Shown here: positions 30,482-64,000 of the stretch, piece by piece
Layout of the letters: each line of letters begins with the position of its first letter
Position numbering within the stretch: the stretch's first letter is position 1
Assembly: GCA_002269645.1 (NCBI GenBank)
Contig: NIVC01002865.1
Location: forward strand, 1 to 64,000
Reading direction: 5' to 3'
Origin: Macrostomum lignano
Taxonomy: Eukaryota
DNA length: 64,000 nucleotides
Made by a program: the position numbers and the translations under genes
Notes under the pieces: model-generated
Databases searched by the model: none
What the model was told of the DNA's origin: nothing
The model's input: only the letters and a program-made list of their open reading frames with translations

Positions 30482-33400
30482 TCACTGACGTGGCTTGGCA
30501 TTTGGATTAATGGTGGCGTCAACTCCTAGCGTGGACAGAAAGCTTCTCTCGGGTTCTTTCGCCTTCTCGGCCTCGTAGTTTCGAATATCTTTCAGGTGCT
30601 CCGCCAGCGCTGAGCGGGCAACTTTGTAGCCAGGCCTGAGGTCCAGGAAGTTGAACAGCATATCGTCTAACGGGTCCTCGTCTTCGATCTCTTCTGCGTC
30701 CACTTCAACCTGGGGTTGAAAGTGAAATATGTTTACTTCGTTGTGCTATCGGAATTATAGTTGCGGTACAGCAACTTGAAGGTTTGGGCTAACTCCGAAC
30801 TATCTGCTTTTTTATCTGCATTTAATAAATCAAATTAGTATTAATAGAATAATAAATCAATTTTCAGAAATAATTGATTACACCTTCCTCAATGTGCAAC
30901 CGACAGCTCAGCCGCAGCTATTGCGCGGAGCATCTGAAGGCTGCGTACGGCTGTTCAGTCCAAGAACTGGGGGGTCGCCACACACCCTCAGTTACCCCAG
31001 TGCAGCTAATGCTGGCACCCAGTTTACAGCTGAGTGAACTGAAGCAATGCAGAGTTAGTGTTGCTCAAGGATAAAAATTTTAGTAAGTGGGTCGGGAATC
31101 GAACCCCCGACCTTTCAGTCGTGAGTCCGACGCTCTGACCACTAAGCTACGAGTAGAAACGCCTTTCAACAGATTCCAACAATACGAAATGTTTATGGTT
31201 CTTGTGAAGCATTGTGTACTTTAGATAGCCTCTCACAAAAACAGAGGTCAACTCCCTTGGCACTTCATCACAGTTCTTTTAAAGTTTAATTTTTGTAACA
31301 TGCTGAAAATCATTTAGTTGAAATATCCTGCTAAAAATACTATACCTTGTGCTCATTTTCCAATAAAGCTACTGCCAGTTATGAACAATTTTATCAGTTT
31401 TAAACCTAGACGGGTTCCCTTGTCAAGTCAAATAGGTTCTTAAGGCACTTACATCGTCCATCTTGAGTCCGCAGTGCGGGCAGCTCTCCCTGAGCTTAAC
31501 CAATCCTTTTCTGTCTGTGTAGTGGGCGCACGGCGCGCAGATGCTGTTTTGGCACGAGTCGCAGACGGTGAAAAATTCGTTAAAATTTGGCATCGACAAA
31601 TTTCCCCGAATACCGCATCGAATACAGCGGACTGTCGGCAGATTAAACAGAGATCTTAACAAGTCCATCCAACTATTTAAGCCCTCCTTCACGTAAGTGT
31701 TGAATAGAAATGATAAGCTGCTGTCGTCTTGCTCGAATTGAGACATTTTTAAAAGATCGCGATTGGATGGTAACAGCTCCCTGTCTGCCTGGATTTGGCG
31801 GCGAAGCCTGCAAGCGGTGGGATGCGGGTGGCGGCGGAGCTAAGAGTGTGATTAGGGTGGTGGGTATGGGGTGGCGGCGGAGCTAAGAGTGTGATTAGGG
31901 TGGTGGGTATGGGGTGGTGGCGGAGCCGAGAGTGTTATTATGGTGGTGGGTATGGGGTGGCGGCGGAGCTAAGAGTGTGATTAGGGTGGTGGGTATGGGG
32001 TGGTGGCGGAGCCGAGAGTGTTATTATGGTGGTGGGTATGGGGTGGCGGCGGAGCTAAGAGTGTGATTGGGGTGGTGGGTATGAGGTGGTGGCGGAGCCG
32101 AGAGTGTTATTGGGGTGGTGGGTATGGGGTGGCGGCGGAGCTAAGAGTGTGATTAGGGTGGTGGGTATGGGGTGGTGGCGGAGCCGAGAGTGTTATTGGG
32201 GTGGTGGGTTTGGATGGGCGGCGGAGCTCAGAGAGTGTGATTGGGGTGGTGGGTATGGGGTGGCGGCGGAGCCGAGAGTGTTAATGGGGTGGTGGGTATG
32301 GGGTGGCGGCGGAGCCGAGAGTGTGATTGGGGTGGAGGGTATGAGGTGGTGGCGGAGCCGAGAGTGTTATTGGGGTGGTGGGTTTGGATGGGCGGCGGAG
32401 CTAAGAGTGTGATTGGGGTGGTGGGTATGGGGTGGCGGCGGAGCCGAGAGTGTTTTTGGGTTGGTGGGTTTGGGGTGGCGGCGGAGCCGAGAGCGTGATT
32501 GGGGTGGTGGGTATGGGGTGGTGGCGAGGCCAAGAGTGTGATTGGGGTGTGGTGGGTTTGGGGTGGCGGCGGAGCCGAAAGTGTGATTGGGGTGCTGGGT
32601 TCGGGGTGGTGGCAGAGCTGAGAGTGTGATTGGGGTGGTGGGTTTGGGGTGGTGGCAGAACTGAGAGCGTGATTGGGGTGGTGGCTTGGTATCCCTCCAG
32701 AGCAAACATACCAGACGGCTCGTTGAACAGCCCTCGCCGGTTCCAGTTCCAGCATGATATGATGCCTGAGCTTCAAGAAGAACGGGCCAAACAGGGTGAG
32801 CAGAGTGTAAAGTAGCATTAGGCCTCCAATCAGAGCATCGAGTGCCCAATTGGGTTTAGTGGCTTTGGGTGAACAGGCCAATACGTTGATATCTAGGTTG
32901 ATCTCTCTCAGCGCTTTCTGTGAGCAAAGTACGAGAGTAAAATGCTGGATCTCTTTGAATCCATAATTTTGGCTGCGGAGAGTAGGTTTGAGTGTGTTAT
33001 TAGAGACTCACCTGCATGTGAATTATAATTGTCAGCAGCAGAGCCATAGGACTGGTCTCAGCCAGATCCTTTGCAGCCTTCAGCGTAAGTCTAGTATCAA
33101 TATTTCTCTCAATTTTAATCGCTCGATTCCATTTCTGTTCCATGAAATAGGCCATTGAATAAAAGATCCACTCAAGACCCATCACCAGGATGAAGGGCAC
33201 CAGACGGATTATCGTTAGCAGCAGGTCGGAGCCACCTAGTCGGTGAACTACATCGCTGATCATGCTCTCGGCCAGAATTGACACTCGGGTTTTCTCGTAC
33301 GCGTCTAGCGGCAGAAGGGGAGGCTCCAGTTCCTCTAGCCTGGGGAGAGAGAAGAAGTATACAAGGTAGAGGTAGGCAAGGTAGAGGTAGGCAAGTTAGA

Positions 33401-36400
33401 GGTAGCCAAGGTAGAGGTAGGCAAGGTAGAGGTAGGCAAGGTAGAGGTAGGCAAGGTAGAGGTAGGCAAGGTAGAGGTAGGCAAGGTAGAGGTAGGCAAG
33501 GTAGAGGTAGGCAAGGTAGAGGTAGGCAAGGTAGAGGTAGGCAAGGTAGAGGTAGGCAAGGTAGAGGTAGGCAAGGTAGAGGTAGGCAAGGTAGAGGTAG
33601 GCAAGGTAGAGGTAGGCAAGGTAGAGGTAGGCAAGCTAGAGGTAGGCAAGGTAAGAGGTAGGCAAGGTAGAGGTAGAAGAGGTAGAAGAGGTAGAGGTAG
33701 GCAAGGTAGAGGTAGGCAAGGTAGAGGTAGAAGAGGTAGAGGTAGGCAAGGTAGAGGTAGGCAAGGTAGAGGTAGGCAAGGTAGAGGTAGGCAAGGTAGA
33801 GGTAGGCAAGGTAGAGGTAGGCAAGGTAGAGGTAGGCAAGGTAGAGGTAGGCAAGGTAGAGGTAGGCAAGGTAGAGGTAGGCAAGCTAGAGGTAGGCAAG
33901 GTAAGAGGTAGGCAAGGTAGAGGTAGAAGAGGTAGAAGAGGTAGAGGTAGGCAAGGTAGAGGTAGGCAAGGTAGAGGTAGGCAAGGTAGAGGTAGGCAAG
34001 GTAGAGGTAGGCAAGGTAGAGGTAGGCAAGGTAGAGGTAGGCAAGGTAGAGGTAGGCAAGGTAGAGGTAGGCAAGGTAGAGGTAGGCAAGGTAGAGGTAG
34101 GCAAGGTAGAGGTAGGCAAGGTAGAGGTAGGCAAGGTAGAGGTAGGCAAGGTAGAGGTAGGCAAGGTAGAGGTAGGCAAGGTAGAGGTAGGCAAGGTAGA
34201 GGTAGGCAAGGTAGAGGTAGGCAAGGTAGAGGTAGGCAAGGTAGAGGTAGGCAAGGTAGAGGTAGGCAAGGTAGAGGTAGGCAAGGTAGAGGTAGGCAAG
34301 CTAGAGGTAGGCAAGGTAAGAGGTAGGCAAGGTAGAGGTAGAAGAGGTAGAAGAGGTAGAGGTAGGCAAGGTAGAGGTAGGCAAGGTAGAGGTAGAAGAG
34401 GTAGAGGTAGGCAAGGTAGAGGTAGGCAAGGTAGAGGTAGGCAAGGTAGAGGTAGGCAAGGTAGAGGTAGGCAAGGTAGAGGTAGGCAAGGTAGAGGTAG
34501 GCAAGGTAGAGGTAGGCAAGGTAGAGGTAGGCAAGGTAGAGGTAGGCAAGCTAGAGGTAGGCAAGGTAAGAGGTAGGCAAGGTAGAGGTAGAAGAGGTAG
34601 AAGAGGTAGAGGTAGGCAAGGTAGAGGTAGGCAAGGTAGAGGTAGGCAAGGTAGAGGTAGGCAAGGTAGAGGTAGGCAAGGTAGAGGTAGGCAAGGTAGA
34701 GGTAGGCAAGGTAGAGGTAGGCAAGGTAGAGGTAGGCAAGGTAGAGGTAGGCAAGGTAGAGGTAGGCAAGCTAGAGGTAGGCAAGCTAGAGGTAGGCAAT
34801 GTAGAGGTAGGCAAGGTAGAGGTAGAAGAGGTAGAGGTAGGCAAGGTAGAGGTAGGCAAGGTAGAGGTAGGCAAGGTAGAGGTAGGCAAGGTAGAGGTAG
34901 GCAAGCTAGAGGTAGGCAAGCTAGAGGTAGGCAATGTAGAGGTAGGCAAGGTAGAGGTAGAAGAGGTAGAGGTAGGCAAGGTAGAGGTAGAAGAGGTAGA
35001 TGTAGGCAAGGTAGAGGGAGAAGAAGTGGAGAAGAGGTCTATAAATCTTCAGCAATGGCAAGAGAAATCAAGGGAGAGTGGATCGAATTCATAGAGAAAT
35101 CAAGGGAGAGTGGATCGAATTCATAGAGAAATCAAGGGAGAGTGGATCGAATTCATAGAGAAATCAAGGGAGAGTGGATTGAATTCATAGAGAAATCAAG
35201 GGAGAGTGGATCGAATTCATAGAGAAATCAAGGGAGAGTGGATCGAATTCATAGAGAAATCAAGGGAGAGTGGATCGAATTCATAGAGAAATCAAGGGAC
35301 CACAGAGGCGCCCGTGTGTTACCTAAGAAACGGAGCCGTGACGAAGTTGTTCTCAAACTCGGCAACCCGCATGTACTTTTTGTAGAATGAGATGGACAGC
35401 AGCAGGGTGATGGAGAACACAGCCAGGGACAGTACGGAGCACACAATCTTGACAATTCTGCTGGCATGGCGATAAGTTCTTTTCACTTCTTTCGCTTTCT
35501 GGCCAACTGCCATCTGCATTTGATGCCTCATCTCGGCTAGCTGATGCGAGAACCCGCCGGTCATGGACACCACCACCCTGGTATCTGGTCCGATGGCGTC
35601 CTTGATTAGCTCGCGGATGGCTTTGATGTCGTTGAGTCTAACTAAAACGTTCTTCTGCCACCACTCAGTTACGACTTTGAACTTGGCTAAAAATATGAAA
35701 GTAGATATTTTTGTAATCACTTCTTAAGCTAATCAGTACCGTAAAGACGCTCATATTTTTCAAAAGAGATATGTGCTCTTTGAGCTGTGAGTGGTGGAAT
35801 TTTTTCTCTGCTCTAGAGAAAGCATAACCGAATTTGACTCCACCAATCACAGCTCTAGAGACTCTAGAGACAGCATAACCGAATTTTGCTCCACCAATCA
35901 CAGCTTTAGAGACTCTAGAGACAGCATAACCGAATTTTGACTCCACCAATCACAGCTCTAGAGACAGCATAACCAAAGTTGACTCCACCAATCACAGCTC
36001 TAGAGACAGCACAACCGAATTCGACTCCACCAATCACAGCTCTAGAGACAGCATAACCAAAGTTGACTCCACCAATCACAGCTCTAGAGACTCTAGAGAC
36101 AGCATAACCGAATTTGACTCCACCAATCACAGCTCTAGAGACAGCATAACCGAATTTGATTCCACCAATCACAGCTCTAGAGACAGCATAACCGAATTTG
36201 ACTCCACCAATCACAGCTCTAGAGACTCTAGAGACAGCACAACCGAATTTGATTCCACCAATCACAGCTCCAGAGACAGCATAACCGAATTTTACTCCAC
36301 CAATCACAGCTCCAGAGACAGCATAACCGAATTTGACTCCACCAATCACAGCTCTAGAGACAGCATAACCGAATTTGACTCCACCAATCACAGCTCTAAA

Positions 36401-38456
36401 GACAGCATAACCGAAGTTGACTCCACCAATCACAGCTCTAGAGACAGCATAACCGAATTTGACTCCACCAATCACAGCTCCAGAGACAGCATAACCGAAT
36501 TTGACTCCACCAATCACAGCTCTAGAGACAGCATAACCCAATCACAGCTCTAGAGACAGCATAACCCAATCACAGCTCTAGAGACAGCACAACCGGATCT
36601 GACAGGTAAATGGTACACAGGAGTTGCAACTGTATGCAAGCAAACATAAACAAACCTTCAATGATGGCTCTAGCTTTGGCTAGCAGTGGACAGATTTTAC
36701 TCGTGCCAATATCGTGGATAAAGTAGCCAATAGTAGGCTTGGCTATCGGAGTAGTGCCCGTGATAGAGCGCACTAAATTCACCAGCGAGCTGACCATCTG
36801 CACTAAGCCACCAAGGACGCGATGCCGACGAAATCTTTTAGCCAGAACGCGAGTCAACCTGGCACAGGAGCCGTAAAAACTCACCCTTGGTCGCAATTTG
36901 CCTAACATTTTTCCTACTTTCTTTAAAAGTCGCCCCAAAGCTTTACCAAGCTTGTCCAAGGAAATGTAGATTGAGTGTACAATTCGATAGAATATTTCGG
37001 CCACCAGCTGCATAGCGGATATCAACAGACGGACCGGGATGAGAAACAGGCTAACCACGTTTTTGCCGTGAAGCGATTTGACCACGCTCACAATGTCGAA
37101 AAATTGCTCATGCAGACAAGACTGTGAAAGTTTGAAAAGTTTGAAAAGTACATTGAAGTAACAGTGCCTTTTAGCGATAGACACTGGCTCAGAATGTGCT
37201 TTTTCTCAACCCCAGTCTCCGATGCTTATCGCGTGTTTTGGCCCAATCTCCACCCCTCATTTATTCACCCCCAGTCCCCGATGCTTATCGCGTGTTTTGG
37301 CCCCAACCCCCACCCCTCATTTATTCACCCCCAGTCCCCGATGCTTATCGCGTGTTTTGGCCCAACCCCCACCCCTCATTTATTCACCCCCAGTCCCCGA
37401 TGCTTATCACGTGTTTTGGCCCCAACCCCCACCCCTCATTTATTCACCCCCAGTCCCCGATGCTTATCACGTGTTTTGGCCCCAACCCCCACCCCTCATT
37501 TATTTACTCCAGTCCCCGATGCTTGTCGCGTATTTCGGCCCAACCCCATCCCTCATTTATTCACTCCAGTCCCCGATGCTTATCGCGTATATGCCTAAAA
37601 CTACACCACCGCAATAAAATTACGAATTGAGCTTAAATGCATACTTTTGAGGCAGAAATGGAGTCCATGTTGCTTCTCAGATTGGTTGCCGGACCGGAAG
37701 CGAGCAAAACCAGACAGCCAATTAGCAGCGCGTTGCGCAGGGCCCCCCTAGCCATGGACGGAATCATCAGAAAGGTGACGGCTCTGGTTGCTGACGAGTA
37801 GGAAAGCAGCAGAGTTAGCACGGTACTAATTATGCAGGTGACAATCACGCGAACCCGCAGGTCAAGGTCCATGAGGTAGGTGGCCATGAGGTAGAAGACC
37901 AAGCTAAGGACTAATGAAGCGATTAAGCTGCGAATGGTGTCTTTCGCCTTCTCCCAGCTCTATAAAGGGGTGCAATTACAAGTATTGTTTTCTTTCTGAC
38001 AGTCAGTATCAGTGTTGCAGTGTCGCAGTGGCCCAGTGTCTCACGATCAGTGTCTCAGCGTCTCAGTGTCTCAATGTCTCAGTGTCCCAGTTGTCCCAGT
38101 GTCCAAGTGTCTCAGTATCTCAGTGTCGACTAAGAGTCTTGGTTTCCGAATATCTGACTTACATAGCAGTGTCTGCCATAAAAAACCCAATACAAGAATA
38201 GCGCACTAACCTTGTACTCGAAGAAGTCAAAGTAGAATATCTCCACCTCCTTCATGTACAGTCCTTCAAGTGTGAGCTCGTTAAGCGGTTTCACCCCGGA
38301 ACGCAGCATCTTCGCCCAGTGCATGAAGTTTAGAATAGCCGTATAGCAGGCCACAAATAGTTTAATTATGGCTACCAGAGGCGATGAAGTGGCCCGTTTA
38401 TTCTCCAGCATCTGCCTGCCCGTCTTGTGCAGTCCAGGCCTGTTCATGGACTGCAT
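30482..38456 (-). CDS. DCST1/DCST2: DC-STAMP domain protein (DCST1/DCST2; spe-42/sneaky-like), 8 exons, about 857 aa
   Basis: Exons: 38456-38211, 37959-37645, 37187-36656, 35686-35323, 33339-33012, 32917-32712, 31807-31453 and 30709-30482, with consistent phases. Motifs: L..SGP..N, Y...EFENNFVT..F, LLPL...EK, C.P....P, F.LKLRH.I and a C-terminal 8-Cys RING-like domain. The start codon and the exon 3 acceptor are less certain, and the paralog is not resolved. Confidence 0.85.
31087..31156 (-). pseudogene. tRNA-like sequence (tRNA pseudogene or SINE head; CAC in loop position)
   Basis: A-box TAGCTTAGTGG and B-box GGTTCGATTCCC are present, but the acceptor and anticodon stems pair poorly. It lies in DCST intron 7. 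Confidence 0.7.
31828..32690. repeat. 43-45-bp G-rich minisatellite, about 20 copies
   Basis: Direct reading; DCST intron 6. Confidence 0.95.
33360..35020. repeat. 15-bp (GGTAGAGGTAGGCAA)n array with higher-order blocks
   Basis: Direct reading; DCST intron 4. Confidence 0.97.
35062..35298. repeat. 32-bp minisatellite, about 7 copies (GAGAAATCAAGGGAGAGTGGATCGAATTCATA)
   Basis: Direct reading. Confidence 0.95.
35810..36595. repeat. 42-bp minisatellite, about 18 copies
   Basis: Direct reading; DCST intron 3. Confidence 0.95.
37210..37590. repeat. 59-60-bp minisatellite, about 6 copies
   Basis: Direct reading; DCST intron 2. Confidence 0.93.
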
Positions 38457-40021: not shown

Positions 40022-42452
40022 TGTTATGGTTTAGGATCTCCGGGGGTCCGGTCAGTTTAGGGTGTCCGGGGCGGAGACCCTAAACGTTTAGGATCTCCGC
40101 CCGGAGACCCTAAACCGTTTAGGATCTGCCCTGGAGACTTCTAACGGTTATGGGTCTCCGGGGTAGGAGATCTGAAACCGTTTAAGGGTCTCCGGGGCAT
40201 TTTCAGGTCTCCGCACCCGGAGATCTTAAACCAGTTTCTGATCTCCCCCCCAGGAGACTCTAAACCAGTTTCAGCTCTCCGTCAGGGCCGCAAAAACAAA
40301 GTCCTGGTTTAGGATCTCCGGTTTCCGATCTCCCCCCCATTTGTGTAAAACCAATGGTCATGGTATTGAACGCGTACATGTATAAGAAGTGGAAAGGCAT
40401 TTTTATCATCAACGTAGCATTAGTTTTATATGTATATGCTCGCACAACTGTGTATTTAAATGGAAAACTGTTTACTGTTAAAGTATTGAAGTAAATGTCC
40501 GCTTAGTGAAAAACCGGTGATGCACTTTCAGCTTGGAGGAAGCATCTCTTGAGGTGTTTCCCATTGACACACCTGGTTAGTCCTCCTAGCCTGTACACGT
40601 TTTGACCAAGACACCTGGTCACGATGTAGACTTGCTGACTCCAAGTGTATCGCATCTTACCACCCTTCCGATCGTCCCTGCGAAGATTGCGAAGCCTAAC
40701 TCTGTCCCCTCGCTTCAGATCCTGAACCCCAGCTGCTCCCACGGTGTGACGCTTTCGCATCATTTCCTGGGCCTGCTTGATCCTGCTGGAGATTAGCTTT
40801 CGCACTGCCGCTCGCTTCTTGTCTTTGACTGCAACAGAACGCCTATTGATTGCAGTGGGCTCAGGAACATCAGTTAGCGTTGCGGCATGCTCGCCAAGCA
40901 AAGGCTCAAAGCCAAAGGCGGCTCTGCAAAATGGCATGGCGCCTGCTTATATTCTACGGCATAAACTTCAATGATACATATGAGGTATTAATATCTTCTC
41001 TTTTTCTACCTGAACGGCGAAAAGCCTGTCACCGAATGGCGTCTGCTGTTGTATGCGAGTTGAACATCATTCAACTTGGTGTCCCAGTCGGTTGGCTCTT
41101 CGGAATCACTGATCTTCCTCAGGAGGTCAATGCAAGTTTGATTGAGTCGCTCGGTTTGACCGTTTGTCTGTGGATTCGAATAATGTATGTGCGTGAGTAG
41201 AATTCAAGAAAACAGCAACAGCTTATATGCGATAAAAAGAGACTTGCCTGTGGGTGGTAGGCACTAGTTACTCTTCTTTCCGTCCCACCGGATTGTAGAA
41301 GAGCATCTACAACAGAGTTGCAAAACTCTCTCCCCTGATCGCTGAGAATCACCCTAGGCCAACCGAAAAGCCCAAAAATGTCCCTCAGTTCGGCAGCGAT
41401 CGTCTGAGCTTGAATGTTTGGTAACGCGCGGAAAATGGCAAATTTGTAAATTTGCAGCACACAGTTAGGACATACTTTGAGCCTTAAATTAGATTATATT
41501 GGAGCAATATTTCATTAGAGTAATTGATTGATTTTAGTTTCTGCTAATGAATAATTTGTAACTTGATAGACCTACCGTTGGGCGTGGTGGTCGGCATTGT
41601 GATGCAATCCATACACAGGAATCCAAAGAGGCGCTCTGCATTAGAAGGTACTTCAACCGGGTAAAGCTCCCTCTGCTTTGAGGTAAACTTTTTGTTGACC
41701 AGCTCGCACCTGTCACAAGACTCGACCACTGCCTTGGCAATCGGTGTGACGGGGATGTCAGCATAGTATCGTGCAGTAAAAAGGCTCACTGTGCTGTTGA
41801 CACCCACGTGACTTCCTTGCGAGTGAAGGCTGCGGATCTTATCCCGTACCTCTTCCTCTGTAAAAAGTACTCTGCGATGGTCTTCAGGCCGCATTCGCTG
41901 ACTTTCGTCCTTATTAGTCACCCTGTAGTAAAGCGCTCCGTCATGGATGGAGAAACGCTTGCTCTTTTCTCTAATACGTCTTTTTAAGTTAGCCTTATCT
42001 TTGGCGTCCAATCTGGCTGGTACCTGGGTGTATTCATTGTTTAGGACGTGGAAAAATATTTGATTGAGCGAAGCCATCAAGCTTTGAAATGCAGAAATCG
42101 ACGAAAATCACACAGCAACAAACCTTTCTTATCATCTGCCCAATATAAATGTTTACAGCGCTTCCCGCCACCCATAAAATATGAGTACAAAGCTGATCTC
42201 CAAAATGTGCAAAGCCTATTGAAAGTTACGCAAGACTGCTCACACTTTGGGGTGCCAATCTCGATGTACATAGAAGTAGCTATAATTTTCATATAGGAAA
42301 GAACCGCGGAGATCCTAACACGGTGGAGACCTGTAACTCTATCTTATGTTATGGTTTCCGATCTCCGTGTGGGCGATCTTAAAATGACACAATTTTCAGT
42401 TTGTGATCTCCGGGCCGGAGACCCTAAAACGCGGAGATCCTAAACTCTAACA
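40022..42452 (-). mobile_element. Ginger-type (gypsy-integrase-related) DNA transposon, 2431 bp
   Basis: TIRs TGTTATGGTTTAGGATCTCCG / CGGAGATCCTAAACTCTAACA match 19/21. There are many GGAGATCC/GGAGACCC subterminal repeats. It encodes an integrase but no RT or Gag and has no LTRs. The flanks share only GCG (3 bp), not a clean 4-bp TSD. Confidence 0.85.
40503..42077 (-). pseudogene. Ginger integrase/transposase, 4 exons, one frameshift
   Basis: Exons are 42077-41576, 41482-41248, 41167-41010 and 40923-40503. It has an HHCC Zn finger, D(MDC)...D(SDQGREF)-35-E(GQTERLN) and a C-terminal GD.V.L.N.RR..RKGGK...W module. Exon 2 is 1 nt short (near 41443). Confidence 0.88.
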
Positions 42453-44703: not shown

Positions 44704-47700
44704 AGCGTCATGTAAACAATCATAGAAGTGTCATGTAAAAAATCATAGAAGCGTCATGTAAAAAATCATAAAAGCGTCATGTAAACAATCATAGAAGCGT
44801 CATGTAAAAATCATAGAAGCGTCATGTAAACAATCATAGAAGCGTCATGTAAAAAATCATAGAAGCGTCATGTAAACAATCATGAAAGCGTCATGAAAAA
44901 ATCATAGAAGCGTCGTGTAAACAATCATAGAAGCGTAATGTAGAGAATCATAGAAGCGTCATGTAAAAAATCATAGAAGCCTCATGTAGAGAATCATAGA
45001 AGCGTCATGTAAAAAATCATAGGAGCGTCATGTAAACAATCAAAGAAGCGTCATGTAAAAAATCATAAAAGCGTCATGTAAAAAATCATAGAAGCGTCAT
45101 GTAAACAATCATAGAAGCGTCATAAAAAAATCATAGAAGCGTCATGTAAAAAATCAAAGAAGCGTCATATAAAAAATCATAGAAGCGTCATGTAAACAAT
45201 CATAGAAGCGTCATGTAAACAATCATATAAGCGTCATGTACAAAAGCATAGAAGCGTCATGTAAAAAAGCATAGAAGCGTCATGTAAACAATCATAGAAG
45301 TGTCATGTAAACAATCATATAAGCGTCATGTAAAAAAGCATAGAAGCGTCATGTAAATAATTATAGAAGCGTCATGTAAAAAATCATGAAAGCGTCATGA
45401 AAAAATCATAGAAGCGTCGTGTAAACAATCATAGAAGCGTAATGTAGAGAATCATAGAAGCGTCATGTAAAAAATCATAGAAGCCTCATGTAGAGAATCA
45501 TAGAAGCGTCATGTAAAAAATCATAGGAGCGTCATGTAAACAATCAAAGAAGCGTCATGTAAAAAATCATAGAAGCGTCATGTAAAAAATCATAGAAGCG
45601 TCATGTAAACAATCATAGAAGCATCATAAAAAAATCATAGAAGCGTCATGTAAAAAATCAAAGAAGCGTCATATAAAAAATCATAGAAGCGTCATGTAAA
45701 CAATCATAGAAGCGTCATGTAAACAATCATATAAGCGTCATGTACAAAAGCATAGAAGCGTCATGTAAAAAAGCATAGAAGCGTCATGTAAACAATCATA
45801 GAAGTGTCATGTAAACAATCATATAAGCGTCATGTAAAAAAGCATAGAAGCATCATGTAAATAATTATAGAAGCGTCATGTAAAAAATCATAGAAGCGCC
45901 ATGAAAAAGTCATAGAAGCGTCATGTAAAAAATAATAGAAGCATCATGTAAACAATCATGAAAGTGTCATGTAAAAAAATCATAGAAGCGTCATGTAAAC
46001 AATCATGAAAGCGTCATGAAAAAATCATAGAAGCGTCGTGTAAACAATCATAGAAGCGTAATGTAGAGAATCATAGAAGCGTCATGTAAAAAATCATAGA
46101 AGCCTCATGTAGAGAATCATAGAAGCGTCATGTAAAAAATCATAGAAGCGTCATGTAAACAATCAAAGAAGCGTCATGTAAAAAATCATAGAAGCGTCAT
46201 GTAAAAAATCATAAAAGCGTCATGAAAAAATCATAGAAGCGTCATGTAAACAATCAAAGAAGCGTCATGTAAAAAATCATACAAGCATCATGTAAAAAAT
46301 CAAAGAAGCATCATGTAAAAAGTCATAGAAGCGTCATGTAAACAATCATAGAAGCGTCATGTAAACAATCATATAAGCGTCATGTACAAAAGCATAGAAG
46401 CGTCATGTAAAAAAGCATAGAAGCGTCATATAAACAATCATAGAAGCGTCATGTAAACAATCATATAAGCGTCATGTAAAAAAGCATAGAAGCGTCATGT
46501 AAACAATTATAGAAGCGTCATGTAAAAAATCATAGAAGCACCATGAAAAGTCATAGAAGCGTCATGTAAAAAATAATAGAAGCATCATGTAAATAATCAT
46601 GAAAGCGTCATATAAAAAAATCATAGAAGCGTCATGTAAACAATCATGAAAGCGTCATGTAAAAAATCATTGAAGCGTCAGTTAAAAAATCATTAAAGCG
46701 TCATATAAAAAATCATAGAAGCGTCATGTAAACAATCATAGAAGCGTCAAGTAAACAATCATAAAAACATCATGTAAACAATCATAGAAGCGTCAAGTAA
46801 ACAATCATAAAAACATCATGTAAACAATCATAGAAGCGTCATCTAACAATCATAGAAGTGTCATGTAAACAATCATAGAAGCGTTATATAAAAAATCATA
46901 GAAGCCTTATATAAAAACTAATGGAAGCGTCATTTGAGAAATCATAGAAGCGTCATGTAAAAAATCATAGAAGCGTCATGTAAACAATTATAGAAGCGTC
47001 ATGTAAACAATCGCAGAAGCGTCATGTAAAAAATCATATAAGCGTCATGTAAAAAATCATAGAAGCATCATGTAAACAATCATAGAAGCGTCATGTAAAC
47101 AATCATAGAAGCGTCATGTAAAAAATCTTAGAAGCGTCATTTAAAAAATCATAGAAGCGTCATGTAAACAATCATAGAAGCGTCATGAAAAAATCATAGA
47201 AGCGTCATGTACAAAAGCATAGAAGCGTCATGTAAAAAAGCATAGAAGCGTCATATAAACAATCATAGAAGCGTCATGTAAACAATCATATAAGCGTCAT
47301 GTAAAAAAGCATAGAAGCGTCATGTAAACAATTATAGAAGCGTCATGTAAAAAATCATAGAAGCGCCATGAAAAGTCATAGAAGCGTCATGTAAAAAATA
47401 ATAGAAGCATCATGTAAATAATCATGAAAGCGTCATATAAAAAAATCATAGAAGCGTCATGTAAACAATCATGAAAGCGTCATGTAAAAAATCATTGAAG
47501 CGTCAGTTAAAAAATCATTAAAGCGGCATGTAAAAAATCATATAAGCGTCATATAAAAAATCATAGAAGCGTCATGTAAACAATCATAGAAGCGTCAAGT
47601 AAACAATCATAAAAACATCATGTAAACAATCATAGAAGCGTCAAGTAAACAATCATAAAAACATCATGTAAACAATCATAGAAGCGTCATCTAACAATCA

Positions 47701-48715
47701 TAGAAGTGTCATGTAAACAATCATAGAAGCGTCATGTAAAAAATCATAGAAGCCTTATATAAAAACTAATGGAAGCGTCATTTGAGAAATCATAGAAGCG
47801 TCATGTAAAAAATCATAGAAGCGTCATGTAAACAATTATAGAAGCGTCATGTAAACAATCGCATAAGCGTCATGTAAAAAATCATATAAGCGTCATGTAA
47901 AAAATCATAGAAGCATCATGTAAACAATCATAGAAGCGTCATGTAAACAATCATAGAAGCGTCATGTAAAAAATCTTAGAAGCGTCATTTAAAAAATCAT
48001 AGAAGCGTCATGTAAACAATCATAGAAGCGTCATGAAAAAATCATAGAAGCGTCATGTAAAAAATCATAGAAGCGTCATGTAAAAAAATCATAGAAGCGT
48101 CATGTAAAAAATCATAGAAGCGTTGTGTAAACAATCATAGAAGCGTCATGTAAAAAATCAAAGAAGCGTCATGTAAACAATCATAGAAGCGTCATGTAAA
48201 CAATCAAAGAAGCGTCATGTAAAAAATCATAAAAGCGCCATGTAAAAAAGCATAGAAGCGTCATGTAAAAAATCATAGAAGCGCCATGTAAAAAATCATA
48301 GAAGCGCCATGTAAAAAATCATAGAAGCGTCATGTAAACAATCATGAAAGCGTCATGTAAAAAATCATCAAAGCGTCAGTTAAAAAATCATAGAAGCGCC
48401 ATGTAAAAAATCATATAAGCGTCATATAAAAAATCATATAAGCGTCATGTAAACAATCATAGAAGCGTCATGTAAAAAATCATAGAAGCGTCATGTAAAA
48501 AATCATAGAAGTGTCATGTAAACAATCATAGAAGCGTCATGAAAAAATCATAGGAGCGTCATGTAAAAAATCAAAGAAGCGTCATGTAAAAAATCATAGA
48601 AGCGTCATGAAAAAGTCATAGAAGCGTCATGTAAAAAATCATAGAAGCGTCATATAAAAAATCATAGAAGCGTCATGTAAACAATCATGAAAGCGTCATG
48701 TAAAAAAATCATACT
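44704..48715. repeat. 23-bp satellite, about 170 diverged copies with higher-order duplications (ATCATAGAAGCGTCATGTAAAAA)
   Basis: Direct reading. Confidence 0.98.
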
Positions 48716-52081: not shown

Positions 52082-54027
52082 ATGGTCAAGGGAGACAAGC
52101 GCAAGTGGAAGGAGGGCTTCTTCGATAAGCTGACTACCCTATTGAATGAGTACTCCAAGGCTTTCATTGTTAGCGTGGACAATGTCGGCTCCAAACAGAT
52201 GCAGCAGATCCGACAGTCGATGAGAAACGAAGCGGTGATCCTTATTGGCAAGAACACCATGATAAGGAAAGTGGTCCGAGCCATGCTAGACGATCATCCC
52301 ACTCTGGAGAAGCTGCTGCCTCACGTCCGACTCAATGTTGGCTTCGTGTTCACCAACTTGGATCTGAACGATGTGCGCACAAAGATCGAAGCTAACCAGG
52401 TTGCCGCCCCGGCCAGGGCCGGCTCCATCGCCCCCTGCGATGTAGTTGTGCCAGCTCAGAATACCGGCCTGGGACCGGAGAAGACCAGCTTCTTTCAGGC
52501 CTTGAACATCCAGACTAAGATTACTCGCGGCACTATTGAAATCTTGTCTGACGTGCCGCTGATTAAAAAGAATACAAAGGTAATTTTTTTATTGATTGAT
52601 GCCCTCGCAAAAATGCCCTTACCTACTTACTCTTTTTACAGTAGTAAAATTGGCGTTTTTTGTTGTAAGCTGCACCTCAATCTCAGTTTGTTTGCATACG
52701 CGAGACCCTTGCCAGGCCGATAAAAATTTTGGTTTTCCTCTTGCCCTCTTGTGTCTGACTTTGACCTCTCCTTACTGCTCTCTCATTGGCTGAGCTAGAT
52801 TGGGCCTGCCCCTAGGCTGAGTTTCGTCCGTCTGACTTTGCACTCTCTCCTTACTGCTCTCTCATTGGCTGAGCTAGATTGGGCCTGTCCCCTAGGCTGA
52901 GTTTCGTCCGTCTGACTTTGCACTCTCTCCTTACTGCTCTCTCATTTGCTGAGCTAGATTGGGCCTGCGGCCCTGCCCCTAGGCTGAGTTTCGTCCGTCT
53001 GACTGCACTCTTTACTGCTCTCTCATTGGCTGAGCTAGATTGGGCCTGCGGCCCTGCCCCTAGGCTGAGTTTCGTCCGTCTGACTGCACTCTTTACTGCT
53101 CTCTCATTGGCTGAGCTAGATTGGGCCTGCGGCCCTGCCCCTAGGCTGAGTTTCGTCCGTCTGACTGCACTCTTTACTGCTCTCTCATTGGCTGAGCTAG
53201 ATTGGGCCTGCGGCCCTGCCCCTAGGCTGAGTTTCGTCCGTCTGACTTTGCACTTCCCTCCTGCTGGGCAGAGACGCCAAAAATGGACTTTTTGTAATTC
53301 CTGGCAGTCTCAATCAGCAGGAGGCAGATTAATTAACCAATGCGGAATTTAATCACCGATTTATTTTCTGTTAATTTTGAGTTAATCGGTTTCATGCTTC
53401 CGCAACATTCGAAATTGGCAAATTCTGCTGCAGATATTGTATAAATCAAATTCATGGAAAAAAACTTATTTTATGCTAGCTTACTTGATAATAACGCTAA
53501 CGCTAAGTATGCTAATAACTTTGTTGCATTAGTTTACATACTTTAAATTATAAACCTTACGATATGTACTTTATTAGGTCGGCCAGTCTGAAGCCACCCT
53601 GCTGAACATGCTGAAGATCTCGCCGTTCTCTTACGGCCTGAGGATCCGTCAGGTGTACGACAACGGCAGCGTGTTCGGTCCGCAGGTGCTTGACATCCGC
53701 GACGAGGACATTGTGGCCAGATTCTTGGCCGGCAGCCGCCGAATCGCTGCCCTGTCCCTGCAGCTGGGCACGCCAACTCTGGCTTCCGCTCCGCATTCGA
53801 TTGTCAACGCGTTCAAGCGTTGCCTAGCGGTTGCCGTGGAAACTGACTACGATTTCCCGCTAGCCGATAAGGTCAAGGAGTACATTAAAAATCCTGACAA
53901 GTTTGCTGCGGCTGCCCCGGCTGCTGCCGCCGCCGCCCCAGCCGCTGCCGCCGCTAAGAAAGAAGAAAAGAAGGAGGAAAGCTCCGAGGAGTCCGACGAC
54001 GATATGGGAATGTCGCTGTTCGATTAA
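52082..54027 (+). CDS. RPLP0: 60S acidic ribosomal protein P0 (uL10), 2 coding exons, 315 aa
   Basis: Exons are 52082-52579 and 53578-54027 (phase 0, GT-AG). Motifs: [47 protein letters not shown] and the [13 protein letters not shown] tail. AATAAA is at 54258. Confidence 0.98.
52750..53255. repeat. ~75-84-bp minisatellite, 6-7 copies, in the RPLP0 intron
   Basis: Direct reading. Confidence 0.93.
53256..53410 (+). ncRNA. Box H/ACA snoRNA, copy 1 (intronic in RPLP0); predicted dual guide for LSU rRNA
   Basis: Hairpin, then H box AGATTA (53326), hairpin, then ACA (53405) plus 3 nt. Both pockets are 14 nt from their boxes. They are complementary to the conserved LSU sequences UGAUU-UC-UGCCCAG and GCAUGAA-UG-GAUUAA. 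Confidence 0.9.
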
Positions 54028-54561
54028 CTCTAAAAGCCAGGAATTCCACGCCAAACTGATGGATTTGTTTGCTCTGGGTTGGAACTTTTACTAAAAACTG
54101 GTATCGTTGCTGTCTTCTAGTGTCTGTTTTTGGGTGCCGCGGGCCTGTGCGCCAGCTCACACTGCAGCCCGGGGGGGCGGGTCCGCTGTGGCACTCTGGC
54201 TGATTGATTGATGCCTGAGTAAAATGTTGCTTAAGAAGGAAATGATCACATAACAACAATAAAAAAGATTAAGCGTTGGCTTGCCGACTTTTGTGGTCAA
54301 AAAGTTTTTTGTGGATTGAAAAAGTATAGTCGCGCGTGTTGTCTTGCACTGATTTTATTTTTAACTGCTTGTTAGGTTAAATTTGTCATTTAGATGCTTA
54401 GTAAGTTAGTTGTTTAGTCTTCTAGTAGTTGTTTAGTTAGTTAGCTAGCTAGTCAGTCAGTTAGTTAGCTAGTTAGTCAGCCAGTTAGTTATTTAGTTAG
54501 TTAGTCAGTTTATTCGACACAGCGCTAAACAATAAGAATTGTTTTTAATAGGCTTAACTTT

Positions 54562-54715
54562 GCCTCCTGCTGGGCAGAGACGCCAAAATGGATTTTCTGT
54601 AGTTCCTGGCAGTCCCAATCAGCAGGAGGCAGATTAATTAACCAATGCGGAATTTAATCACCGATTTATTTTCTGTTAATTTTGAGTTAATCGGTTTCAT
54701 GCTTCCATAACATCC
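54562..54715 (+). ncRNA. Box H/ACA snoRNA paralog, copy 2 (slightly degenerate 3' stem)
   Basis: Near-identical to copy 1, with H box at 54631 and ACA at 54710. TTCCATA replaces TTCCGCA. Confidence 0.8.
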
Positions 54716-54902: not shown

Positions 54903-55063
54903 GCCTCCTGCTGGGCAGAGACGCCAAAATGAACTTTCTGTAATTCCTGGCAGCCTCAATCAGCAGGAGGCAGATCAACCTAACTTTAATCGCGGAATTT
55001 AATCACCGATTTATCTTCTGTTAATTGTTGTGAGTTAATCGGTTTCATGCTTCCGCAACAGTG
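54903..55063 (+). ncRNA. Box H/ACA snoRNA paralog, copy 3
   Basis: H box AGATCA at 54972 and ACA at 55058; the guide sequences are intact. Confidence 0.85.
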
Positions 55064-55635: not shown

Positions 55636-55932
55636 ATTTTATGCAACCAGCTATCTATGGCCAAAACTGCCTGATAGTTAAGCCAAGCAAGTTAGAGACA
55701 GAGAGAGAGAGAGGGAGAAAGAGATCGCTGCAAGGCGCGAGTATCCTTCGTGCAGATGTCTATGGCCGAATTATCAACTTGGTTTCCTTTGTCTATGAAC
55801 AAGACCAAATCTATACTGCTGCTAAATGGGAATTCTCAACGTCTTCCCATCTTGGCAAGCAAAAGAGATATAAACGCACACCTTTGCTAAAACTAAAGCG
55901 AAAACAATTATTGCTGGTATCTTTAAAATTTT

Positions 55933-56083
55933 CCTCCTGCTGGGCAGAGACGCCAAAGGAACTTTTTGTGTTATCTCTGGCAGCCTCAGTCAGCAGGAGG
56001 CAGATTAACTAACCAATGTGGAATTTAATCACCGATTTATCTCTTCAAAGTGAGTTAATCGGTTTCATACGTCCACAACATTG
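55933..56083 (+). ncRNA. Box H/ACA snoRNA paralog, copy 4
   Basis: H box AGATTA at 56002 and ACA at 56078. There is a compensatory stem change, TGTGGA/TCCACA versus TGCGGA/TCCGCA. Confidence 0.82.
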
Positions 56084-56164
56084 TTTTTTTAAGCGTAGTT
56101 ATTATCAATTATTAATTTAGTATGATAATGGTGCTATCGATAAACGAATTGTGTTAATGTATTC

Positions 56165-59761: not shown

Positions 59762-62700
59762 ATGGAATCTTCAGTAGGCGGCGCTCATTCGGACGCAGAT
59801 TTTCGCAGTCTGTTTAGCATTCCATTGTCCTCGTTGTTCAACTTTCAAAGAAATAATCAGCCACAGCAGGAGGCCCAGCAGCAGCCGCCGCCACAGCCGC
59901 CTGTGCCTCTGATTCCGATGAATGGATTTGACGCGAATTATTTGCACGCACTAAACGATGAGCAGCAGTTACAGTTGCATCAAGATGAAGCTTGGCAATC
60001 TCGGCATCATCACTCGCTTAGTAGGCAGCATCATAGCGTCAGGCATCAACGTCATGCCGCCAACAATGCCCCGTTGAATTATTTCACTAGCCAATCGTCA
60101 GCTGATAGTGCGCATTATTCTGGGTGAGTAGTTCACTCGGTTCTGCTGCCTGCTGGTACTGCGCTTTTCTTGGACAGCTGCAGTTGAAGGATGTGTTCTC
60201 ATGTTTGATAAGAATGTGCTTTCAATCCTTATGTTGAATGGGATTATGTGTCTTAGATTTCTCATATCAATAGGGTTAGATATGTTTTTATGTACTTCCA
60301 ACATAGGGTATGTTCTCATTTTGACACATGCTCTCACATGGAACGTACTAGAAGATCATGTTCTCATGATGGTAGGTTATGTTCATCATACTGGTATGGT
60401 ACTGTAGGTTCTTATGTCACATGTACATATAGTAGGATATGTTCTCCAATTCTTATGCTAGTAAGTTTTGCATAAAATCTACCGAAACCTTCAGCAACGA
60501 AGAGGAGCAGAGCGGCTCTCCACTAATTAAACGGGACGTGAGCACTCCAATTAACCTGTGAGTCTCAATTCAATTGTTGATCTATTATGACCGATTATTC
60601 TGTAAACTTTCCCGACAGTAAACATGCTGCACAATCTCTTTTTTATAATCGAATTTAGCATGGAGTTCGGATTCGAACCCTCGGAGATGGAGATCGACTC
60701 AGAAGAGATGTCCCTGCCTGCCAGTGTGCTCATGTGAGTAGGCTAGATGCTCAAGCAGCGGTCACTGGGAATCTTGGGTAGGCGATTAGGGATGCAGTGA
60801 GTATCAGTGAGCCACTTTGAACAGCCGCTTTTATCAGCGAGTTCTGGCGATTCCCTGATCGCGATTCCTTGATAGGCGATTCCTTGATGGCGATTCCCGG
60901 ATGGCGATTCCCTGATGGCGATTCCTTGATGGCGATTCCCTGATGGCGATTCCCTGATGGCGATTCCCGGATGGCGATTCCCTGATGGCGACTCCCGGAT
61001 GGCGATTCCCTGATGGCGATTCCCGGATGGCGATTCCCTGATGGCGACTCCCGGATGGCGATTCCCTGATGGCGATTCCCTGATGGCGATTCCCTGATGG
61101 CGATTCCTTGATGAGCGATTCCTTGATAGGCGATTCCTTAATGGGCGATTCCTTGACCGCGATTCCTTGATTGGCGATTCCTTAATGGGCGATTTCTTAA
61201 TGGGCGATTCCTTAATCGGAGAGTTCTTGATGGCGACTCCTGCAAGTGTATTTGTAAAATGCAATCACTAGTTTACACATTGCCAGCTATCAAACTGTCT
61301 GTTATAAATCTCCAATTTCTCGCCTGGAAATTTCTCGCCCGCAAAGAAGCGGCCGACCGAACCACAGCGAAGTGGAGAAGCTGCGCCGGGACCGCATGAA
61401 CTCCAGCATCAACGCGATGGCTCGCCTCGTGCCCGCGTGCCGATCGGCCAGCAGGAAGCTGGACAAACTCACGGTGCTGCGCCTGGCCGCCCAGCACATC
61501 AAACTGCTGCGGGCGAGGTCCAGCTCCCTGATGCACACCCCGGCGGATCTGTTCAGCGGCGAGGAGCTGCAGCTGCTGCTGTCGGATGTGAGTCAGCTCA
61601 GTCTCAGAGATTGGGAAATGGAAAACTGGTTGATTGACCAGGCCAATCCGCCCACTGCCTTGTGGACTCCTGAGGGCACCTTGGCACAGACACTGAGACA
61701 GACACTGAGACAGACACTGAGACAGACACTGAGACAGACACTGAGACAGACACTGAGACAGACACTGAGACAGACACCAAGGCAGACACTGAGACAGACA
61801 CTGAGACAGACACTGAGACAGACACTGAGACAGACACTGAGGCAGACACTGAGACAGACACTGAGACAGACACTGAGACAGACACTAAGACAGACACTAA
61901 GACAGACACTGAGGCAGACACCAAGGCAGACACTGAGACAGACACCAAGACAGACACTGAGACAGACACTGAGACAGACACTGAGACAGACACTGAGACA
62001 GACACTGAGACAGACACTGAGACAGACACTGAGACAGACACTGAGGCAGACACCAAGGCAGACACTGAGACAGACACTGAGACAGACACTGAGACAGACA
62101 GACACTGAGACAGACACCAAAACAGACACTAAGGCAGAGACACTGAGGCAACACTGAGACATACATTAATACAGGCAATAGAAATCGCCCCCCCCCCTAT
62201 ACAGCAAAAGTCAACCTGACCCCTCCATTGTTTCGCAGAAGTCCTCCCTGCAAGGCTTCCTACTGGTAGTCGAGTGCGACAGAGGCAGAATACTCGGCGC
62301 CGCTAACTGCAGCAATAACGGAATTCTCGGCGCCACCGTCAACTCGGTAGGTTTTTCGACTCTCTCCTATATATTCAATTAAATTGCTTGAAAGACAGTA
62401 TATCACGTGACTACAGCCAGTCGCCTACCACCTTCCAACGCTTTCGCTGTCCAATAAATAAGCTTCAATCATGTCACGTGACTTAGCCAGTCGCCCACCT
62501 CCCTCCAACGCTTTCGCTGTCCAATAAATAAGCTTCAATCATGTCACGTGACTTAGCCAGTCGCCCACCTCCCTCCAACGCTTTCGCTGTCCAATAAATA
62601 AGCTTCAATCATGTCACGTGACTTAGCCAGTCGCCCACCTCCCTCCAACGCTTTCGCTGTCCAATAAATAAGCTTCAATCATGTCACGTGACTTAGCCAG

Positions 62701-63270
62701 TCGCCCACCTCCCTCCAACGCTTTCGCTGTCCAATAAATAAGCTTCAATCATGTCACGTGACTTAGCCAGTCGCCCACCTCCCTCCAACGCTTTCGCTGT
62801 CCAATAAATAAGCTTCAATCATGTCACGTGACTTAGCCAGTCGCCCACCTCCCTCCAACGCTTTCGCTGTCCAATAAATAAGCTTCAATCGTGTCACGTG
62901 ACTTCAGCAAATCACCCACCCCAGCTCTTCTACTCAATATTTTACAAGTCTCGCACCAGATCACGTGACCATAAAAGCTATACGCCGCCCACCCACCTCC
63001 CTTCCCCCTTCCGTCTGTCTGCCCAGTCGGACCTGATTGGCCAGTGCCTATTAGACTTGGTGCACCCGCGAGACGCGGATCTAGTTCGTCAAGAGCTGAC
63101 TGTGCCGGATCTGCCCAGCCTTCAACAGCAGCAGCAGCAGCGCCAAGGCTTCTCCACCGACAGGCTGGGCAGCTGCGGGCTTCGTCGGAGATTCTTTTGT
63201 CGATTTCGGCATCCCGGCGGATCGGCAGCTGGCGGCGGACTGCTTGGGGTCGCTTCGAAACGCAGGGGCG
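59762..63270 (+). CDS. bHLH-PAS transcription factor, BMAL1/cycle/ARNT class; 5' exons, gene continues past the window
   Basis: Exons are 59762-60123, 60659-60733, 61347-61587, 62239-62346 and 63027-63270, with consistent phases. bHLH: NHSEVEKLRRDRMN...KLDKLTVLRLAAQHIK. PAS-A: GFLLVVECDRGRIL, DLIGQCLLDLVHPRD and RRRFFCRF. Confidence 0.9.
60845..61240. repeat. 14-bp minisatellite (GATGGCGATTCCCT)
   Basis: Direct reading; intronic. Confidence 0.92.
61686..62160. repeat. 12-bp minisatellite (CAGACACTGAGA)
   Basis: Direct reading; intronic. It is the source of the QTLR ORF. Confidence 0.95.
62400..62905. repeat. 70-bp minisatellite, about 7.5 copies, each with a GTCACGTGAC E-box and CCAAT
   Basis: CACGTG occurs at 62404, 62475, 62545, 62615, 62685, 62755, 62825 and 62895, with one more at 62962. 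Confidence 0.96.
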
Positions 63271-63844
63271 GTGAGTTTTGGTCGCCCGGGGAGGGGTGAG
63301 GGAGAGGGGGAGAAATGAGATGGAGAGAGCTGGAGAGTAAAAGTATAATGAAGGGGGAGGGAGAGGAGAGTGAAGGGAGAGAGTGATGATAGAGTGATGA
63401 TAGAGTGAAGGGAGAGTGAGGGGAGAGTGAAGGTAGAGTGAAGTGCTAGGTGACAAAAGAAAACATGAATCTGTTAGTAAGTCATGTTTGGTCACTGTCT
63501 TCAGTATTTATACAGTGTTTATGTATATCAAAGTTTTCTTGCTTGAAGCCGAAGGCGCAGATGTTTGTTGGAGTCGAATAAGAGAACTTTGCTCACTGAC
63601 AGTTAAGGTTACAGCGCCACATAGATCAAAGCCAGCCGCCTGCTGTTATACAAATATTTAAGCTTAGAAACACAGGCTCTAAGCAACCAAAACTGAGCCA
63701 CTTTTTCGTCCTAAAGTTTGAACTTCGATTAGATGATATTGCATAAATGCAGATGTGCATGAAATCTCGTGGATAAACATCGGTTGTATCAACTTAACCG
63801 ATAAAAAACAAGGTACCAGGTACTTTATCACTACCATTTTGTGT

Positions 63845-63930
63845 CAGGAGCGCCATGATTGTGTCAGAAGTACCATAGTTGTGTCAGAAGTACCATAGTT
63901 GTGTCAGGAGTACCATAGTTGTGTCAGGAT
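63845..63930. repeat. 20-bp minisatellite, 4-5 copies (GTACCATAGTTGTGTCAGAA)
   Basis: Direct reading. Confidence 0.85.
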
Positions 63931-64000
63931 CCTGTTTGAGCGCGTGTGAGCGCGTGAGCGCGTGTCTGTGTACAGTATTGGCGCGCTTGTCTGTGCTCAG

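Follow-up and report, generated by a model that had tools for sequence, protein, structure and literature searches.

A CACGTG-bearing minisatellite in an intron of a BMAL1 orthologue of Macrostomum lignano

Introduction

Minisatellites located in introns, also termed variable number tandem repeats (VNTRs), can act as enhancers, as exemplified by the VNTR in intron 2 of SLC6A4. Mammalian Bmal1 is driven through RORE elements, not through E-boxes, and to our knowledge a direct autoregulation of BMAL1 via intronic E-boxes is not known in mammals or flies. E-box enhancers bound by CLOCK:BMAL1 have been described in intron 2 of Dbp, the Per2 promoter and the Rev-erb introns, and in strong rhythmic sites of this dimer an E1 and an E2 element are typically arranged in tandem, separated by a spacer of 6-7 bp (PMC3043000). 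The CLEAR element recognized by TFEB has the consensus GTCACGTGAC, a typical site being located ~200 bp upstream of the start of transcription (PMC8175148). Here, we analyze an array of nine CACGTG E-boxes in intron 5 of a BMAL1 orthologue of the flatworm Macrostomum lignano. The array lies in a stretch of 64,000 nucleotides of contig NIVC01002865.1 (assembly GCA_002269645.1), referred to as the window, and was compared with a second copy of the gene at a sister locus on NIVC01000012.1. The array is probably an old, still turning-over intronic minisatellite, a VNTR, in which the E-box is carried along as a passenger.

With the intronic VNTR enhancers the array shares its intronic position, the head-to-tail arrangement of units of 10-100 bp, factor motifs in each unit, and a copy number that differs between gene copies; it differs from them in that its motif is not conserved above the neutral rate and in that it is known from sequence alone. 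As in the circadian E-box enhancers, perfect CACGTG motifs are found within an intron of a clock gene, whereas the known strong sites combine E1 and E2 with spacers of 6-7 (or 16-17) bp and the E-boxes of the array are 70 bp apart with no clear E2. The 10-bp palindrome of the CLEAR element (PMC8175148) is present in identical form in seven units, but lysosomal genes have one CLEAR site or a few of them, ~200 bp upstream of their starts, while the array is nine-fold and lies 2.6 kb inside a transcription-factor gene. It does not have the promoter-proximal position of CLEAR in lysosomal or autophagy genes, but resides in intron 5 of a basic helix-loop-helix (bHLH)-PAS gene.

Results

Architecture of the E-box array

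Of the 15 CACGTG hexamers in the window, nine lie within 62400-62970 and six in the other 63.4 kb. A stretch of 570 bp would be expected to contain ~0.07 sites, given a background of 1.2e-4 per bp. The nine sites start at 62404, 62475, 62545, 62615, 62685, 62755, 62825, 62895 and 62962, with spacings of 71, 70, 70, 70, 70, 70, 70 and 67 bp. Tandem Repeats Finder (TRF) reports a repeat at 62403-62920 with a period of 70, 7.4 copies, 97% matches and a score of 962, which is followed by two degenerate 3' units. For the unit division the sequence was cut at each motif, yielding nine units within the following intron.

Intron 5 of the BMAL1 orthologue, 62347-63026, + strand: 680 bp, phase 0, GT..AG; splits the PAS-A coding sequence.
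E-box array, units 1-9, 62402-62969, no strand: nine (A/G)TCACGTGAC motifs at ~70-bp spacing, defined by TRF and the motif positions.
Unit 1, 62402-62472: 71 bp, begins with ATCACGTGAC, five differences from the consensus; its orthologue is unit B0 of the sister locus (core TACGTG).
Inner units 2-7, 62473-62892: 70 bp each, each with GTCACGTGAC, CCAAT and AATAAA.
Unit 8, 62893-62959: 67 bp, GTCACGTGAC followed by ~18 nt of unit-like sequence; the CCAAT is gone.
Unit 9, 62960-63026, + strand: ATCACGTGAC, then the CCCACCTCCCT...CTGTC segment of the unit in diverged form.

Unit 7 deviates by one substitution (CAT>CGT) from units 2-6, which are identical to each other. The perfect 10-mer GTCACGTGAC is found at seven of the nine sites, while the first and the last site read ATCACGTGAC; CCAAT is present in units 1-7 only, and TCACGTGA is confined to the array within the 64 kb. 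An earlier note on this DNA had described a 70-bp minisatellite that multiplied the GTCACGTGAC palindrome together with CCAAT to give nine CACGTG in ~570 bp, inside an intron within PAS-A. Period, motifs and the position of all nine sites (62404-62967) agree with that description, as does the location in the GT..AG intron 62347-63026, most of which is occupied by the array.

The edge units are less well preserved. Past its motif, unit 8 matches the unit at 12/15 positions (shuffle p=0.06), and the remainder is unalignable. For unit 9, a local alignment to the unit segment CCCACCTCCCT...CTGTC gave a p of about 0.009; its CCCACCTCCCT...CTGTC-like segment is the polypyrimidine tract of the intron and runs into the AG acceptor. 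Head-to-tail copies, a unit length within 10-100 bp and edge units (1, 8 and 9) that are more diverged than the central units 2-6 identify the array as a minisatellite. As the nine E-boxes are mutual copies, they represent one to three independent events rather than nine.

Each of units 1-7 also contains a sense-strand AATAAA (62453-62878), so that the intron has seven potential poly(A) signals in the array. Three units of the sister copy have AATAAG instead, and the hexamer therefore looks unconstrained.

The array in the sister locus

Starting from the genes next to BMAL1, MsrB and RPLP0, and from the members of their clusters, the sister locus was reached. It is located on NIVC01000012.1 (L002, L003 and L005), with the genes in the order RPLP0-MsrB-BMAL1 as in the window, and its unique sequence is 93-95% identical to that of the window.

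Copy A of the BMAL1 gene, 5' part: window 59762-64000.
Copy B of the BMAL1 gene: L005:4001-15866 (NIVC01000012.1).

The same intron of copy B contains an array with a period of 70/72, 8.1 copies, 93% matches and nine CACGTG. Its layout comprises a diverged first unit, seven inner units, a 67-bp unit 8 and a unit 9 merging into the acceptor; by units, 9 in the window compare with 10 in L002. Since both gene copies have the same array in the same intron, the array predates the duplication. This basic layout, from the diverged first unit to the unit 9 at the acceptor, thus existed before the two copies, now ~6% diverged, were separated.

All minisatellites of the locus have kept their positions between the copies (window 60845-63929 versus L002:14372-19942), with the following copy numbers.

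81-bp array: 4.4 in the window, 3.6 in the sister locus.
14-15-bp array: 25.7 in the window, 33.7 in the sister locus.
12-bp array: 39.6 in the window, 42.2 in the sister locus.
70-bp array (E-box): 7.4 in the window, 8.1 in the sister locus.
11-bp array GGAGAGTGAAG: 8.5 in the window, 122 in the sister locus.
20-bp array: 4.6 in the window, 41.8 in the sister locus.

The E-box array resembles the other minisatellites of the locus (12-, 14-, 11-, 20-, 41- and 81-bp) in its retained position and in its diverged edges and homogenized centre. In contrast to it, they lack CACGTG, and some of them, the 11-bp and 20-bp arrays, show a far larger change in copy number, amounting to a 9- to 14-fold shift between the loci.

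Conservation of the E-box was evaluated against the divergence between the copies, which is 1.2-3.7% in exons and 4.5-7.7% in the intron; unit 8 and its L002 orthologue differ by 4.5%. In the three orthologous pairs of edge units, 2/30 motif positions are changed versus 10/174 other positions. One of these changes affects the first unit, in which CACGTG of the window corresponds to TACGTG in the sister copy, so that the core is lost. Of the columns of the 13 inner units, 1/10 in the motif and 8/63 outside it are variable (Fisher p=1.0). These point estimates fall on the neutral expectation and suggest that the E-box evolves at the intron rate with no conservation above neutral, although three edge units and 13 inner units give the comparison low power. 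CCAAT is invariant in 15/15 first and inner units of both copies, as are most unit columns.

The five identical inner units of the window contain a TCAT variant that is absent from the sister copy, which instead has a mixture of 70-bp and 72-bp variants. The inner units have therefore been homogenized since the split, and the array is still turning over.

No further copies of the unit were found in the rest of the window, in L004, in L006 or in the rest of L001-L005, together ~150 kb of sampled genome. Metagenome contigs, a collection that does not include flatworm genomes and is thus uninformative here, contained no match to a 29-nt probe from the unit. In a third copy of the RPLP0-MsrB region, L004:16245-21645 (NIVC01001746.1), collinearity with the window breaks off at 58896, which is 870 bp upstream of the ATG. 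Beyond this point, where the BMAL1 promoter and first exon would be expected, low-complexity DNA rich in GA extends over at least 5.4 kb, and the sequence ends before any BMAL1 exon; the GA-rich stretch reflects either an insertion or gene loss. At L006, the second locus with an RPLP0 paralogue, the neighbouring genes are different and BMAL1 is absent.

Chance expectation in a repeat-rich genome

Tandem repeats make up 36% of the window, with 55 arrays of which 30 are minisatellites (period >=10, >=4 copies); for the M. lignano genome, simple and tandem repeats of 15% have been reported (PMC5730564). The units of the 30 minisatellites total 809 bp. Given a CACGTG rate of 1.2e-4 per bp in the non-repeat DNA of the window, ~0.10 E-box-bearing arrays are expected by chance per window, and ~0.016 for the five arrays within the window-covered part of the BMAL1 gene. 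Extrapolated to 764 Mb, which can only provide an order of magnitude, several hundred E-box-bearing minisatellites would be present in the genome, so that one located inside some gene for a CACGTG-binding bHLH protein would be unremarkable. Given the number of minisatellites, it is thus not very improbable that an E-box array coincides with a matching transcription-factor gene.

In a 60-bp minisatellite at 37206-37588 with the consensus CGCGTG, two copies have turned into CACGTG (37408 and 37468), hence E-boxes arise easily in such arrays. CCAAT/ATTGG is contained in the units of three more minisatellites (52884-53247, 35913-36594 and 31816-32684), one example being CTCATTGGCTGAG in the RPLP0 intron; this number is close to the chance prediction for 809 bp of unit sequence.

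The host gene

Six exons of the host gene were assigned within the window.

Exon 1, 59762-60123, + strand: ATG; MESSVGGAHSDADF...; matches P0185.
Exon 2, 60495-60557, + strand: spliced sequence as in P0185/P0181.
Exon 3, 60659-60733, + strand: P0185.
Exon 4, 61347-61587, + strand: bHLH domain (Pfam HLH, 2.2e-13); HSEVEKLRR keeps the H-E-R triad of the basic region.
Exon 5, 62239-62346, + strand: first part of PAS-A, KSSLQGFLLVVECDRGRIL...TVNS.
Exon 6, 63027-63270, + strand: second part of PAS-A, SDLIGQCLLDLVHPRD...RRRFFCRFR...

Intron 5 is located between the codons for ...GATVNS and SDLIGQCLLDLVHPRD... (SDLIGQ...), and protein P0001 accordingly joins ...TVNS directly to SDLIGQ.... All six exons are open with GT..AG borders. 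The GenBank record leaves this BMAL1 copy unannotated, with only RPLP0 and MsrB called in L001, while the sister copy is annotated as PAA94251.1.

Compared with solved structures, the window fragment scores 111.6 bits with mouse BMAL1 and 91.1 bits with ARNT. For the full-length protein encoded by the sister copy (PAA94251.1, P0181; 686 amino acids) the difference is larger, with 163.9 bits for BMAL1 versus 102.8 for ARNT. P0181 aligns to BMAL1 across bHLH, PAS-A and PAS-B and has Pfam matches to HLH, PAS_11 and PAS_3. The best protein matches are M. lignano UniProt fragments with 98-99% identity, followed by ARNTL1/BMAL1/cycle proteins of arthropods and cnidarians with 40-46% identity; all named ones are ARNTL1 or cycle. 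The C-terminus of P0181, LLGADGGLGDEPDYASMLWPL (...MLWPL), forms a BMAL1-type WPL tail, for which the C-terminal end of mouse BMAL1 served as comparison (PMC3043000); this tail is seen in copy B, as the window stops before the corresponding exon. Judged by scores and C-terminal tail, and not by a tree, the host gene is a clear BMAL1 orthologue, which narrows down the BMAL1/ARNT type proposed in the earlier note. From the alignment to BMAL1, the basic-region residues H, E and R that would read the CACGTG half-site appear to be kept in the host protein.

The strand region of PAS-A is unusually diverged, with ILGAANCSNNGILGATVNSS replacing the conserved ILFVSESV... segment. The region reads ILGAANCSNNGI(L/P)GATVNSS where ILFVSESV... 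is usual. At least two BMAL1 copies are assembled and a third variant occurs among the UniProt fragments (GIPGAIVNSS), consistent with at least two and probably three gene copies in M. lignano. The M. lignano BMAL1 gene carries the identifier Mlig012777.

Schistosoma mansoni has been reported to lack BMAL1 and CLOCK, and the cryptochrome sets of flatworms are reduced, as are the clock gene sets of related flatworms; an M. lignano BMAL1 orthologue is therefore of some interest. An intact BMAL1 orthologue with a WPL tail in a free-living flatworm bears on the question of how much of the animal clock flatworms have retained. A literature search yielded no paper on M. lignano clock genes, a CLOCK partner, a functioning clock or the array, and exact look-ups of the open reading frames overlapping the array or the PAS-A exon and of the UniProt fragments P0001 and P0183 returned no record.

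Discussion

Origin of the array

The array appears to derive from a native piece of the intron, in which the TCACGTGAC palindrome was followed by the pyrimidine-rich CCCACCTCCCT...CTGTC tract. A tandem duplication of this piece by slippage or unequal exchange would have copied the E-box along as a passenger. In agreement with such a local origin, unit 9 is at the same time a repeat unit and the native polypyrimidine tract and acceptor, and no unit copies are present outside the BMAL1 intron in the ~150 kb sampled. After the split of the gene copies, the inner units of the window were replaced by five identical copies of one variant. The nine E-boxes would most likely be selectively neutral or nearly neutral. 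In open chromatin, abundant CACGTG-binding bHLH factors would probably occupy them; binding itself is a prediction, and at the array there is no sign of selection for it. We therefore favour an old, still turning-over VNTR as the probable explanation. In this case, the array is a cautionary example of how a single duplicated motif in a repeat-rich genome can mimic a dense homotypic cluster of binding sites.

Some observations weigh against this interpretation. The 9-mer TCACGTGAC is intact in units 8 and 9 though the rest of these units is mostly unalignable, which could point to an older constraint. The number of CACGTG is exactly nine in both copies, and their units are similar in number (9 and 10), despite the turnover of the inner units and the 9- to 14-fold changes in neighbouring arrays. 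The host product belongs to a family that binds CACGTG and retains the H-E-R residues of the basic region, and the conservation tests have low power, being limited to three orthologous edge units and 13 inner ones. The intact TCACGTGAC in the diverged units 8 and 9 and the constant number of nine E-boxes keep the functional readings alive. As a sign of selective retention, the E-boxes of units 8 and 9 were reduced to a caveat, as the motif changes between copies A and B at the neutral rate.

Possible binding by general bHLH-ZIP factors

The array may instead be a working intronic cis-regulatory module that is bound by general basic helix-loop-helix leucine zipper (bHLH-ZIP) factors such as USF, MiT/TFE or the Max network, perhaps together with NF-Y at CCAAT. 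It would then keep the locus open or boost the transcription of BMAL1 or of a neighbour without any autoregulation. We regard this as the main rival of the passenger reading, possible but rather unlikely. The 10-mer GTCACGTGAC is a near-optimal USF site. In the seven units that contain it, it is also identical to the CLEAR consensus for TFEB (PMC8175148), with ATCACGTGAC at the other two sites, and USF is a competitor for E-boxes of this kind in extracts from liver (PMC3043000). Owing to the identity with CLEAR, binding of USF or MiT/TFE is at least as likely as that of CLOCK:BMAL1, and the flanks in TCACGTGA would suit USF and MiT/TFE as well as CLOCK:BMAL1. The USF/TFEB alternative already raised in the earlier note is thus compatible with the sites. 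The presence of CCAAT in each inner unit, its invariance in 15 first and inner units of both copies and the retention of nine CACGTG in both gene copies are also in line with such a module. However, most unit columns are as invariant as CCAAT, the motif changes at the intron rate with one core lost in copy B, and neighbouring arrays without such motifs have been kept equally well. The location 2.6 kb downstream of the ATG also does not correspond to the usual position of CLEAR ~200 bp upstream of start sites.

Possible autoregulation by CLOCK:BMAL1

That CLOCK:BMAL1 would bind the array, so that the BMAL1 gene feeds back on itself with a strength set by the array length, appears improbable. 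Consistent with this idea are the identity of the host as a true BMAL1 orthologue that keeps the basic-region H, E and R, the canonical CLOCK:BMAL1 site CACGTG, the intronic E-box enhancers of the Dbp and Rev-erb genes, and the different unit numbers of 9 and 10 in the two copies. On the other hand, no clear E1-E2 pair is formed. The hexamers at a spacer of 6/7 bp are CCAGTC and CAGTCG, and CTTCAA and GCTTCA; the best, CCAGTC and CAGTCG, have three mismatches each, at the tolerance limit of PMC3043000, and such a match is estimated to occur by chance in about half of cases. An E1-E2 tandem at the array is unconvincing, being no better than chance, and the E-boxes themselves are 70 bp apart. 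In addition, the E-box shows no extra conservation between the copies, the PAS-A domain is unusually diverged, with ILGAANCSNNGILGATVNSS for ILFVSESV..., and the literature search found nothing for M. lignano on a functioning clock or on a partner of the CLOCK type, while the clock sets of related flatworms are reduced.

The specific version, in which the BMAL1 product together with a CLOCK-like partner would bind its own intronic array and exert positive or negative autoregulation with a gain set by the repeat number, is if anything slightly less probable. If true, it would represent a novel type of clock wiring, in a phylum whose clock is regarded as reduced, and the repeat number would be a natural dial for BMAL1 dosage. 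As M. lignano is amenable to transgenesis (PMC5730564), autoregulation is testable. While the description given in the earlier note stands, its functional half is disfavoured: the proposed copy-number-tunable autoregulatory enhancer gained no support, and an E-box that is not extra conserved and has lost one core, neighbouring arrays that are equally kept and the lack of a clear E1-E2 pair speak against it.

Less likely readings: dispersed repeat or factor sink

It is very unlikely that the unit is a member of a dispersed repeat or transposon family unrelated to the BMAL1 gene. Other dispersed repeats and a gypsy-type integrase remnant do occur in the window, but within the ~150 kb sampled, a scope that could miss a low-copy family, the unit is restricted to this intron of the two BMAL1 copies, and unit 9 passes directly into the native splice acceptor; on these two grounds, a transposon origin is not supported. 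Finally, the sink suggested in the earlier note, in which nine high-affinity palindromes within 570 bp would titrate E-box-binding factors off other targets, is hardly tenable, as nine to ten sites per gene copy are negligible (~0.01%) against a genome-wide estimate of ~9e4 CACGTG (1.2e-4 per bp x 764 Mb) and several hundred other minisatellites, by rough extrapolation, should carry the motif as well.

Other repeats of the window

Rfam detected no family in the entire window. Arrays at the kilobase scale include those with units of 23 bp (21024-23457 and 44704-48713), 17 bp (18183-19677), 15 bp (33362-35017) and 7 bp (25496-26674). Large arrays of the 23-bp satellite AGCGTCATGTAAAAAATCATAGA flank the RPLP0-MsrB-BMAL1 cluster on both sides, at 44704-48713 and at L001:19445-20618 (contig 65612-66785), the latter inside or just beyond the BMAL1 gene.

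A dispersed repeat of ~155 bp occurs at 53254-53408, 54560-54713, 54903-55060 and 55926-56090. Its copies fall in the RPLP0 intron and in the interval from RPLP0 to MsrB, and the sister loci have them too. The remnant of an LTR (long terminal repeat)-retrotransposon integrase at 40506-42107 (- strand) is broken into several reading frames and gives a weak match to Integrase_H2C2, with 21.7 bits versus the Pfam cut-off of 25.5 and an E value of 2e-4.

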